64,000 nt of DNA from NCBI RefSeq assembly GCF_000006765.1, contig NC_002516.2; one strand, written 5' to 3'. The number at the start of each line of letters is the position of its first letter. Positions within the stretch are counted from its first letter, which is position 1. Below are positions 3,091-53,794 of the stretch, piece after piece. The notes beneath the pieces were generated by a model that did no database searches, was not told the origin of the DNA, and saw only the letters and a list, made by a program, of their open reading frames with translations. The translations under genes were made by a program, and so were the position numbers. This DNA is from Pseudomonas aeruginosa PAO1 (lineage in GTDB: Bacteria > Pseudomonadota > Gammaproteobacteria > Pseudomonadales > Pseudomonadaceae).

Positions 3091-3469
3091 GGAGGGGCCT
3101 GTGCAAGCAGGCCTTCCTCTCGCTGTCATCAACCCGTGTGGCCTCTCGCCAGGGCTCGGGTGCATGTTTCAGCGAGGTTGCCCCGAGGGCGCGCCATGGC
3201 CGTCGCGGGCCGGCCGCCGGGAGGCGCTCGCGGAACCTCGCAGGTCCCGCGAAAAGGCCCGGCGCAGAGCCTGCGAACACCCGAGGAAAGGCTGCGAAAA
3301 CAATTCGATGCTCCCGAGATTTTTTCCCCGATCTGTCACCGGAACTTGCGAGTTTTATCCCCAGCGGCCCCTTCGACCGGCTAGGGATGCAAAGCCCGGC
3401 AAGCACGGCGCCGCCTCATGCAAGACGACTTCCTCAACGTACCAACACCACGATGAAAGGAGATTCTTC

Positions 3470-41299: not shown

Positions 41300-41310
41300 G
41301 CATTGGGATC

Positions 41311-41337
41311 TGGAGCGGGCGAAGGGAATCGAACCCT
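41311..41337. repeat. attL (duplicate of the tRNA-Gly 3' end)
   Basis: TGGAGCGGGCGAAGGGAATCGAACCCT identical to 53721-53747. Confidence 0.97.
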
Positions 41338-41430
41338 TTAAAATAGGGTTTTGAAGCGTTCCTATACATTCTAATGCCACTGCCTTCGATTTTTAGGCGT
41401 CTTACTCCGTAGCTCTTCGTGTCATTGATT

Positions 41431-41447
41431 TCGACACATTTTCGACA
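41431..41447 (+). promoter_or_regulatory. Candidate integrase arm-type sites (left arm)
   Basis: TCGACA direct repeat with 11-bp period; the same pair occurs at 53637-53653. Confidence 0.55.
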
Positions 41448-41462
41448 GGTCCTGCATGAGGA

Positions 41463-41491
41463 TTGCATTTTTATCCTGGTTGCTTTATGAT
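41463..41491 (+). promoter_or_regulatory. Sigma70 promoter of the ncRNA-RT-effector operon
   Basis: TTGCAT-17bp-TATGAT; predicted +1 at about A41498. Confidence 0.8.
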
Positions 41492-41497
41492 CACCTT

Positions 41498-41570
41498 ATG
41501 CCAAGACTAGGAGCAGCTCCAGTCACAAATGGCCTCTACAGTCGTCTAGTCTCCTGTTTACGTTTGTGTT
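41498..41570 (+). ncRNA. phrD: PhrD sRNA / candidate retron msr
   Basis: Starts at the predicted +1; closed by AGACTAG(41504-10)/CTAGTCT(41546-52) stem with internal GGAG-CAG-CTCC hairpin; PhrD identity and 3' end recalled from the PAO1 annotation. Confidence 0.65.
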
Positions 41571-41623
41571 GCCCTTTAGGCTCGGCTCGGGCTCGATGCC
41601 TAAAGGGCTTCACAAATAGTAAA
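41557..41623 (+). other. Long msd-like hairpin
   Basis: TTTAC-G-TTTGTG-TT-GCCCTTTAGGC ... GCCTAAAGGGC-TT-CACAAA-TA-GTAAA (22 paired positions); no U-tract on either strand. Confidence 0.75.
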
Positions 41624-41624
41624 T

Positions 41625-41750
41625 CCCCGCTCCCCGCTCCCCGCTCCCCGCTCCCCGCTCCCCGCTCCCCGCTCCCCGCTCCCCGCTCCCCGCTCCCCGC
41701 TCCCCGCTCCCCGCTCCCCGCTCCCCGCTCCCCGCTCCCCGCTCCCCGCT
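41625..41750. repeat. Perfect heptamer tandem repeat (CCCCGCT)18
   Basis: 126 nt, 18 exact units plus CCC; complement (AGCGGGG)18. Confidence 0.98.
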
Positions 41751-41968
41751 CCCTCGATCTTTTACTCATCCCCTCTGCTCTGGGTCTACCGTTTTTCTCT
41801 ACTGGGACTATCACGCCTTTGCGTCCTTCTCCCTTCCATTGTACCTTCTATGCGCTGTGCTACGAGCTTTATGGTGAGTCTTGTTCGCACCAATGTACAT
41901 TTATTGCTGTTGGCTATCGACTGGGTTCCAATATACGATGGAACCATAGATTTCTCGGCAGATGAGAT

Positions 41969-42925
41969 ATGAAGAAGAGACCTTTAGAAGATCTTTTTTT
42001 TGCGATGTACAGAGGGAAGCAGAGTTTCGAACACTTTGCCAATTGCTCTGTCGAAGGTTTATATGAGCCGGTGATGGTGAATGGACGACTCGTATATAAA
42101 ACCGATAAGGATCTGCGTGCGTATCATCGGTTTCTAAATAAATTCTTGTTTGAAAGGCTTCCTGTTGTTGATGATGTTGTGTTTTCTTATCGTAAAGGTG
42201 TTAACGCCGTAGATGCTGTCGAAAAGCATGCAGGTAGTAAGTTTTATTTTCAAACTGATTTAAGGGATTTCTTCAGTAGTCTAACTAAGTCTGATGTTAG
42301 AAGAACTCTGGAATGGGCGAAAGATGTTTGTGTTATTTCAGACTTAGATGTTTGGGTTGAGAGAATTCTGAAGTTGGTTACTATTGGTGATTCTTTGCCG
42401 ATGGGGTTTTCGACTTCCCCTGCAATTAGCAATGCATGCTTATACTCTCTGGATGGGATATTAAAGACGCATTGTTTAAGTAATGGTGTTATATATACTC
42501 GTTATGCAGATGATCTGATTTTTTCCTCGTCGAACAAGCAGGCGCTTGATCCTTTGTTTGGGGTCGTGTGTCGTACCCTCCAATCTGAGTTTTCAGGGCG
42601 GATGGGAATAAATTCACAGAAGACAAAGTACCTAAGAAAGGGGGGGAAAATTAAGCTGCTGGGGCTTAATGTTCTTCCTAATGGAAGAGTTACTGTGGAT
42701 ATGCGGCATAAAAAAGAAATAGAGGTTCGTCTTTTTTATTACGTAAAAGACAGAGCTAGGTTTTTGAAGATCATGGGCGAGGTGGATGATGAAAAAGCTA
42801 TTAAGAAATTCTCTGGTTTAATAAACTACGTAAATACTGTTGATCCGGCTTATCTTGATAAGCTTCGCAAGAAGTATGGCTTAACGATTGTTGATATGTT
42901 TATTCATAAATCACCGAAGCTCTAG
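41969..42925 (+). CDS. Retron-type reverse transcriptase, 318 aa
   Basis: FSYRKG, TDLRDFFSSL, LPMGFSTSPAISN, YTRYADDLIFS, INSQKT, KLLGLNV; no maturase, endonuclease or fused domains. Confidence 0.92.
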   Translation: MKKRPLEDLFFAMYRGKQSFEHFANCSVEGLYEPVMVNGRLVYKTDKDLRAYHRFLNKFLFERLPVVDDVVFSYRKGVNAVDAVEKHAGSKFYFQTDLRDFFSSLTKSDVRRTLEWAKDVCVISDLDVWVERILKLVTIGDSLPMGFSTSPAISNACLYSLDGILKTHCLSNGVIYTRYADDLIFSSSNKQALDPLFGVVCRTLQSEFSGRMGINSQKTKYLRKGGKIKLLGLNVLPNGRVTVDMRHKKEIEVRLFYYVKDRARFLKIMGEVDDEKAIKKFSGLINYVNTVDPAYLDKLRKKYGLTIVDMFIHKSPKL

Positions 42926-42927
42926 GT

Positions 42928-44253
42928 ATGAATTTTCAGATAGTAATAAATAATATCCAACATATTGGTTACGCTGAGCTTGATGTTGATTTAAATGCTA
43001 GTGGAATTATCTGTATAGTCGGGAAGAATGGAGTAGGAAAGACTACTCTAATTAAGGCTATTTTAAATTTAAAGTCTGCCGACACATTTTCTAGAACCGC
43101 CTCGCCTGGTATTTTTAAGGCTAATAGCTCAATGCGCTGTACCTATGGAGAGAACTCATATGAATTCTCTTTTGATTCAGATATAAATGATCTAAATAGC
43201 CGATCCCCTATTCCTGAAGAGTTAAAGTCTGTCATAGACGTTGAGTTACCTATGCCCTTTGGGCAGCGATTTAATAACTATCAAAATATTATGAGCGCGG
43301 ATATGGATATAAGAACCGCGTTGATATTGGGTGAGTACGAGGTACCCGTAGAGCTGATTAGCTTCTTAAGTGATATTTATAAGACCAATAAATTTAATGG
43401 ATTGGTAGAGGTCTCTGCAAAGGGGGGAAGTTACTATTGTATCCCTTTAGATGATGATCGATATGTTCGCGAAGATCACCTCAGTTCTGGAGAATTTTTT
43501 TTAATTAGTTTGTATAGGAAGATTAAGGGGCGTAGTAAGTTTATTGTCATTGATGAAATTGATATTTCTCTAGATGCTGCGGCGCAGGCCCATTTAATTG
43601 GCTGGCTGCGGCGCTTTTGTACAACGGAACAGGTAAAGGTTGTTTTTACTACCCACTCGCTAGCATTGATGAGGACATTAAAAGACGGTGAGTTGTTCTA
43701 TATGGAAGAAAGTGAAGGGAAAGTTAGTGTAATTCCTTCGTCATATAATTATATTAAAAGTGTTTTGTTTGGGTTTAAAGGGTGGGATAGATATATTCTG
43801 ACAGAGGATGCGATGTTGAAGTCTTTGTTGGAGTATGTTTTGGCTAACTATTGTTCTGGTCTTTTTTTTTCTTATCAGATTATCCATGTCGGTGGCGGGA
43901 GTAATGTGGTTGATCTGATGCGCCAAAATTCCACCGAAGGGTTTTTCTCGACGCCCGAAAATGTCATTTCGGTGCTAGATGGGGACCAAGCGGAGTATCG
44001 GTATGCTAGACGGCCCAATGTTTATTGCATTCCATTCTTGAGCGTTGAGAAAGCAATTTTTGCAGAGTACAAGGCCGGAAGATTTTTGCCGGAATTGGCG
44101 CCTGATCCTCGATTTGATACGCCCAAGAATTTTTGTTCGGCAATAGGTCGCGACCGACATGCAACTGAAGCGGATATAATTAAGTATCTTTGTGATAGTT
44201 ATCCAACGGAAGTGCGTAGATTTGCGCAAACCCTTAGTGACTTCCTTAGTTGA
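42928..44253 (+). CDS. ABC-type ATPase fused to a TOPRIM domain (OLD-like retron effector)
   Basis: GKNGVGKTT, LSSGE, FIVIDEID, TTHS; then ILTED, HVGGGSNV, VLDGD (TOPRIM E...DxD) and SVEKAI; 2 nt after the RT stop. Confidence 0.85.
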   Translation: MNFQIVINNIQHIGYAELDVDLNASGIICIVGKNGVGKTTLIKAILNLKSADTFSRTASPGIFKANSSMRCTYGENSYEFSFDSDINDLNSRSPIPEELKSVIDVELPMPFGQRFNNYQNIMSADMDIRTALILGEYEVPVELISFLSDIYKTNKFNGLVEVSAKGGSYYCIPLDDDRYVREDHLSSGEFFLISLYRKIKGRSKFIVIDEIDISLDAAAQAHLIGWLRRFCTTEQVKVVFTTHSLALMRTLKDGELFYMEESEGKVSVIPSSYNYIKSVLFGFKGWDRYILTEDAMLKSLLEYVLANYCSGLFFSYQIIHVGGGSNVVDLMRQNSTEGFFSTPENVISVLDGDQAEYRYARRPNVYCIPFLSVEKAIFAEYKAGRFLPELAPDPRFDTPKNFCSAIGRDRHATEADIIKYLCDSYPTEVRRFAQTLSDFLS

Positions 44254-53720: not shown

Positions 53721-53747
53721 TGGAGCGGGCGAAGGGAATCGAACCCT
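53721..53747. repeat. attR
   Basis: 27-bp repeat identical to 41311-41337; comprises the tRNA T-arm and acceptor 3' end. Confidence 0.97.
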
Positions 53748-53794
53748 CGTCATGAGCTTGGGAAGCTCAGGTAATGCCATTATACGACGCCCGC
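53721..53794 (-). tRNA. tRNA-Gly(CCC)
   Basis: GCGGGCG...TGAGC-TTCCCAA-GCTCA...GGTTCGATTCC...CGCCCGC-TCCA; 74 nt with encoded CCA. Confidence 0.97.

Follow-up and report, generated by a model that had tools for sequence, protein, structure and literature searches.

The locus upstream of the retron reverse transcriptase (RT) gene in prophage Pf4 of Pseudomonas aeruginosa also encodes the small RNA PhrD, and it raises the question of whether PhrD is an RNA gene in its own right or a piece of the retron. A preliminary description of the sequence had raised the second possibility: PhrD was suggested as the msr half of the retron non-coding RNA (ncRNA), the adjacent hairpin as the msd, and a possible long-range a1/a2 pairing was pointed out that would give an RT-DNA of ~320 nt. 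The window, i.e., the whole stretch of 64,000 nucleotides that was analysed, is PAO1-like, and PAO1 coordinates are obtained by adding 744000 to the window coordinates used here. The features discussed below are listed in Table 1.

The attL repeat has a second copy at 53721-53747, a full tRNA-Gly being present on the minus strand at 53724-53794, and the two copies bracket an element of 12.4 kb. Judged by its size and attachment site, this element is prophage Pf4, of which attL is the left end. The retron takes up the first 3 kb of Pf4, as accessory cargo at the left end. A Pf1-like phage record matched positions 41304-41450 only. Elsewhere in the window, an Rfam match to the Pseudomonas sRNA P4 was observed on the minus strand (3255-3469, 262 bits).

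The RT matched the PADLOC profile RT_I-B over its full length (residues 1-316, E 3.7e-140) and Pfam RVT_1 (E 1.1e-17), and the catalytic YADD motif is present in its translation (RYADDL). Against other PADLOC profiles, the E values were 1.6e-51 (RT_II-A) and 5.3e-41 (RT_I-A). The effector ORF begins 3 nt past the RT stop codon, and its product matched ATPase-Toprim_I-B (E 1.3e-197, residues 1-441 of the 443-position profile) as well as Pfam AAA_21/AAA_15. As the OLD-like gene lies downstream of the RT and the RT is nearest to the I-A and II-A profiles, the subtype predicted under the classification of Mestre et al. is I-B1; the YADD-containing RT, a directly downstream ATPase-Toprim gene and an adjoining structured ncRNA are all present. 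PA0715-PA0716 and phrD are already called Retron I-B by PADLOC and DefenseFinder, Retron I-B in PAO1/MPAO1 has been recorded, and deleted, in other papers, and a 2024 paper already lists phrD as the RNA of this retron. The link between phrD and the retron is therefore not new. No relatives of the RT were found in the phage collection searched, and none at E 1e-80 among 34 species genomes of the genus.

Table 1. Positions of the features considered, in window coordinates or, for homologous loci, in the coordinates of the locus named
Feature	Sequence	Position	Strand	Description and basis
attL	window	41311..41337	.	27-bp direct repeat of the tRNA-Gly 3' end; longest common substring
ncRNA (PhrD) promoter, putative	window	41463..41491	+	-35 TTGCAT 41463-68, 17-nt spacer, -10 TATGAT 41486-91
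Type I-B1 retron ncRNA, predicted	window	41498..41623	+	P1 and P2, linker, long hairpin P3; covariance model R1
sRNA PhrD	window	41498..41569	+	5' 72 nt of the predicted retron ncRNA; primer mapping, PAO1 coordinates, P3 anatomy
P1	window	41500..41533	+	GCCA 41500-03 / UGGC 41530-33; encloses P2
P2	window	41505..41524	+	GACU-A-GGAG / CAG loop / CUCC-AGUC; bulged A, 3-nt loop
P3	window	41557..41623	+	67-nt hairpin; conserved base UUUAC 41557-61 / GUAAA 41619-23 (YUAC/GUAR)
Tandem array	window	41624..41753	+	18.6 copies of 7-nt TCCCCGC; TRF; variable spacer outside the conserved ncRNA
Candidate AGTCTTG (earlier a1/a2 partner)	window	41877..41883	+	exactly 7 bp, not extendable; judged a chance match
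Retron reverse transcriptase, PA0715-like	window	41969..42925	+	318 aa; PADLOC, Pfam, YADD
OLD-family ATPase-Toprim effector, PA0716-like	window	42928..44253	+	441 aa; PADLOC, Pfam
Array	L082	290-387
Array	L018	2252-2339		(CTCCAG)x14.5; begins 36 nt after the hairpin
Array	L061	2173-2313		(CACTCTCAG)x15.7; begins 3 nt after the hairpin
ncRNA divergent from RT	L011, L014, L019, L020, L024-L026, L028-L032, L036-L038, L042, L046, L047, L050, L052, L053, L057, L059, L065

The published forward primer PhrDF maps to 41498-41516, the published qRT-PCR and knock-out primers map inside 41512-41566, and sRNA-seq placed phrD at PAO1 785400-785600; the position given for PhrD in Table 1 follows from the primer mapping and the PAO1 coordinates of the sRNA-seq. 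Across 80 homologous loci, a TAnnnT box stands exactly 11 nt before the start of the RNA model described below in 67, with a TTG ~17 nt further upstream. Owing to the weak -35 element, a generic sigma-70 scan made no call at the putative promoter of Table 1. As the TAnnnT box keeps a fixed distance, the 5' end of PhrD corresponds to a conserved transcription start, and the ncRNA would be transcribed from a conserved promoter of its own. The +1 previously predicted at 41498 was borne out by the PhrDF primer, the sRNA-seq and the TAnnnT spacing.

Homologous RT genes were fetched from one genome per species, giving a locus set without the most similar RTs (identities of 88% and 78%). With 41498-41625 as the nhmmer query and the 650-nt upstream regions of 80 RT homologues as the target, the PhrD sequence was found upstream of many distant homologues, including those of Erwinia, Photorhabdus, Burkholderia and Thiodictyon, at a constant start position. 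The strict motif ACTAGGAG-NAN-CTCCAGT was present in 54 of the 82 upstream regions. A covariance model (R1), built from a MAFFT alignment of 34 sequences, gave one full-length match beside 80 of 81 RT homologues, which upholds the earlier proposal of a single retron ncRNA that comprises both PhrD and the hairpin beside it. The loci span Gamma- and Betaproteobacteria, Campylobacterota and Bacteroidota. In the parts of the window searched (1-41621 and 41754-64000), the single R1 match was at 41497-41621 (64 bits, E 7.5e-12). Nothing after the hairpin aligns, the closest Pseudomonas relatives included, and the alignments place the end of the conserved RNA at the base of P3.

The predicted fold of the ncRNA consists of a 5' domain, in which P1 encloses P2, followed by a conserved CCUCUAC linker and the long hairpin P3. 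The fold of 128 nt from 41498 had a z of -5.2, and none of 200 shuffles folded as well. In the 80-sequence alignment, which was fitted to R1 and hence leans towards the structure, 95.1% of cells were paired compared with 33-41% in slid controls, compensatory changes were present in 27 of 31 pairs, and the observed values were reached by none of 500 shuffles. Similarly, the independent MAFFT alignment of 34 sequences had 93% of cells paired (33-40% when slid) and both-side changes in 17 pairs, and again none of 500 shuffles reached the observed values. All five P1 pairs covary (one pair, for example, is GC in 54 sequences and AU in 20), with 98.7% of cells paired. The sequence of P2 is nearly invariant; 100% of its cells are paired, it is seen in MFE structures, and compensatory changes occur in four of its eight pairs, in distant members. 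For P3, both-side changes were found in 18/18 pairs. The hairpin arms recognised earlier within 41557-41623 are thus present and beyond chance, and covariation lends the hairpin strong support.

The preliminary description had closed the 5' domain differently, with AGACTAG (41504-10) against CTAGTCT (41546-52). This 7-bp pairing does exist; however, it competes with P2, is confined to a Pseudomonas subgroup of six members and shows no covariation. It is absent from both the MFE and the centroid structure of PhrD alone. As a separate observation, the linker segment GUCUAGUCUCC (41544-41554) is conserved in the six closest Pseudomonas loci only. As this segment complements GACUAG, which is invariant in P2, the two may form a lineage-specific alternative pairing.

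The region 41498-41623 is thus very probably the ncRNA of a type I-B1 retron that, with its RT and OLD-like effector, is cargo of Pf4; by conservation and covariation, PhrD would be the first 72 nt of this RNA and not a separate gene. One point against the assignment is that neither a conserved unpaired G nor an a1/a2 pairing was found, so that a defining retron feature lacks support.

It is most improbable that PhrD stands alone as an Hfq-type trans-acting sRNA gene with a retron as its chance neighbour. Such a gene would be expected to have its own promoter, as PhrD does, an intrinsic terminator ending in a U tail, and a conservation that does not depend on the genes beside it. The published regulation of rhlR includes reporter assays in E. 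coli, in which the RT is lacking (PMC6344545). However, no terminator of its own was found, and the PhrD sequence is confined to the vicinity of I-B1 RT genes, at 80 of 81 loci. It is also absent from PA14, whose Pf5 lacks the retron module (PMC3272035). Furthermore, the published over-expression fragment of 134 bp (41498-41631) spans the complete retron ncRNA, and the phrD::Gm knock-out, made in a background with both RT and OLD effector, replaces 41533-41538 and thereby cuts the ncRNA in two, separating the 5' domain from the hairpin. Over-expression or disruption of phrD thus also over-expresses or breaks the retron ncRNA in cells where its RT and nuclease effector are present, and the phenotypes therefore need to be re-read. 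Given the published effects on rhlR, PhrD may have a second role. An RNA known from the literature for regulating quorum sensing in a major opportunistic pathogen is very probably the RNA component of a prophage-borne anti-phage retron.

The 3' end of PhrD (41569) lies at the U69-U70/U09-U10 internal loop (2x2 U/U) between the lower and upper stems of P3, and no intrinsic terminator was found near it. As its end sits inside a loop of P3 with no intrinsic terminator nearby, PhrD must derive from the ncRNA by processing or truncation. Trimming by RNase H after partial reverse transcription and endonuclease cleavage at the loop fit this end equally well. Rfam holds no family for the PhrD RNA; between 41200 and 42100 it matched only the tRNA remnant at attL, by chance, as a tmRNA fragment.

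The first of these routes corresponds to a reduced version of what the preliminary description put forward, in which the RT would copy P3 only and stop at ~41570, and RNase H would leave the 72-nt PhrD as the stable msr remnant, possibly still joined to an msDNA of ~50 nt. It would explain why the 3' end falls within the 5' arm of so stable a hairpin, where there is no intrinsic terminator, and in a homologue the RT-DNA does start from the 3' base of this hairpin. The GUUUAC/GUUAC conserved immediately ahead of P3 also resembles the RT-termination linker of the Ec86/Eco7-type msr. For Eco7, the msr is reported to finish on its 3' side in an RNA-DNA hybrid of 6 bp. However, an identical end would result if RNase E or RNase III cut at the U/U internal loop, neither a branching G nor an a1/a2 was found, and the only I-B1 RT-DNA that has been sequenced continues through the PhrD-equivalent region to nt 3. 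On this balance, the remnant model is rather unlikely.

The RT-DNA evidence comes from a retron census preprint (10.1101/2024.01.25.577267, supplementary file 3), in which two I-B1 retrons were tested and both were scored '0 by PAGE'. For one of them, Mestre-308 of Pseudomonas hussainii, an RT-DNA of 116 nt was nevertheless sequenced, as what may be a minor product in the heterologous host E. coli with the effector absent. It is complementary to the ncRNA from GUCAGCG (its first G being the third nucleotide of an RNA that naturally begins AUG) as far as GUAAAAAA, which forms the 3' strand at the base of P3. The two ends of this DNA thus match those of the conserved element. The other construct, Mestre-314 of Burkholderia pseudomallei, began inside the linker and so was without P1 and P2, and no RT-DNA was obtained from it (10.1101/2024.01.25.577267).

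By analogy with this one homologue, the Pf4 RT would initiate at ~41623, the 3' base of P3 and the last position ahead of the array, and would first copy P3, which is probably the start of the reverse-transcription template. Synthesis could continue through the PhrD part, and the product would then be ~120 nt rather than 320 nt. The earlier identification of the hairpin as the msd accordingly holds for the point at which DNA synthesis starts; it does not hold for the extent of the template, since the DNA of the homologue also covers the PhrD-equivalent part. As synthesis on Mestre-308 ran on through that part, a clean split into an msr (PhrD) and an msd (the hairpin) finds no support.

The long-range a1/a2 pairing suggested previously, of CAAGACT (41502-08) with AGTCTTG (41877-83) and with G41510 as the candidate branching G, would define an ncRNA of ~386 nt (41498-41883) and place the array within the ~320-nt RT-DNA. 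A perfect 7-bp complement does exist, and the spacer between the hairpin and the RT in the window is unusually long (345 nt). The first 28 nt were matched for complementarity with the region from the hairpin to the RT start, and the top score was compared with that of dinucleotide shuffles. In the window, the best pairing (41504-16/41775-87) had p = 0.12, and the proposed pairing scored lower, within the range of the shuffles. Over 54 loci there was no excess of complementarity between the 5' end and the downstream region (median p 0.49, Fisher combined p 0.85), and none was found between the 50 nt upstream of the RNA and the 110 nt after the hairpin (Fisher 0.62). The pairing 41502-08/41877-83 is a chance match, its 5' bases being partly engaged locally in the covarying P1, and from these comparisons the I-B1 ncRNA appears to be one without a flanking a1/a2 repeat.

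The branching G fared no better, as G41510 is paired with C41520 in P2, a helix kept in every member. No conserved unpaired G was found; the invariant or nearly invariant G residues all lie in the P1 and P2 helices or at the base of P3. Several other candidates were considered and rejected. A pairing of 41504-16 with 41775-87 (12/13 pairs, counting G-U) has similar partners in some relatives; their registers and positions are inconsistent, and the shuffle test was negative. Pairing of the CCUCUAC linker or of the ACUA of P2 with the tail after P3 holds in some lineages only. The base stem of P3 was also considered as a1/a2 with G41562 as the branching G; family members differ at this position, having G, U or C.

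The arrangement of the homologous loci bears on the same proposal. The ncRNA is on the RT strand in 56 of 80 loci, where the spacer between the hairpin and the RT ranges from 8 to 398 nt, and is only 8-24 nt in six loci of Campylobacterota or Glaciecola. In the remaining 24, mostly of Betaproteobacteria (Table 1), the ncRNA is divergent from the RT, with 44-145 nt between its start and the start codon of the RT, which means that no single transcript can carry both there. With spacers of 8-24 nt or a divergent ncRNA, a downstream a2 ~250 nt away is not a feature of the family. Nothing downstream of the hairpin is conserved, the array length itself varies, and the RT-DNA of the homologue starts at the hairpin base. 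An ncRNA of ~386 nt with an array-containing RT-DNA can therefore be given very little credence.

The array belongs instead to the region between the ncRNA and the RT gene, where it is a C-rich, G-poor spacer of variable copy number. In L082, a Pf4-like contig from IMG/VR whose RT is 100% identical, there are 14 heptamer copies compared with 18 in the window; the flanks agree exactly, over the 200 nt immediately upstream of the array and over all 219 nt downstream. The array sequence is common to no homologue. With the Pf4 array included, C-rich, G-poor arrays of unrelated units (7, 6 and 9 nt, ~14-19 copies) directly follow the hairpin in three separate lineages (Table 1). In the first 40 nt after the hairpin, C minus G on the RNA strand is +0.14 in the 56 same-strand loci and +0.10 in the 24 divergent loci, compared with ~0 upstream. 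The recurrence of unrelated C-rich arrays at one position suggests a function, and from composition only the array may be a Rho-loading (rut-like) or otherwise expression-tuning tract.

A broader reading would make type I-B1 a non-canonical retron family altogether, and we hold it only tentatively, as improbable in its full form. It combines the lack of an a1/a2 with a template that comprises the whole conserved RNA, frequent divergence of ncRNA and RT, tuning by the array and PhrD phenotypes that stem partly from the retron. If it were true, the whole RNA including PhrD would serve as the template from the 3' base of P3, independently arisen arrays would tune, perhaps via Rho, the transcription that reaches the RT and OLD genes, and the quorum-sensing phenotypes of PhrD would result at least in part from perturbing a retron. 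As the ncRNA lacks the textbook a1/a2 frame and the census recorded no gel-visible RT-DNA for I-B1 (two tested), Pf4 in PAO1 offers a convenient native system for the study of how DNA synthesis is primed.

With respect to known systems, the RNA described as the quorum-sensing sRNA PhrD (Malgaonkar and Nair 2019) has the same locus and 5' end; it was reported as 72-74 nt with two stem-loops, and the retron was not mentioned. Retron-Eco1 (Ec86, II-A) and Retron-Eco7 (Ec78, I-A) share with Pf4 a related RT clade, a structured 5' RNA followed by a template hairpin, and a start of DNA synthesis on the 3' side of that hairpin. They feature an a1:a2 stem ending in a branching G opposite a G, and an RT that stops at a defined msr linker and leaves an msr of ~40-80 nt, whereas in the Pf4 ncRNA the 5' end pairs locally in P1, no a2 follows the hairpin, and the homologous RT-DNA extends to nt 3. 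Retron-Eco8 (I-B2, OLD class 3A) is similar in that an OLD-family ATPase-Toprim accompanies an RT and an ncRNA in phage defence. However, its RT is of clade 3 (that of Pf4 is of clade 1), its effector lies upstream of the RT, its ncRNA belongs to another family, and its effector is longer, the 623-position profile matching the Pf4 effector only at E 4.3e-09. Retron-Kva1, described as having a 'non-canonical ncRNA', was considered as a parallel and set aside as not relevant, being of type II-A1. The likeness is to type I-B1 (Mestre et al. 2020; OLD class 3B; ncRNA family 'IB1'), a family that itself looks non-canonical, with no a1/a2 or conserved unpaired G found, divergence in 24 of 80 loci and no gel-visible RT-DNA in the census. 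The Pf4 retron shares with it an RT of clade 1, an ATPase-Toprim gene directly downstream and a structured ncRNA beside the RT, and nothing sets it outside this family.
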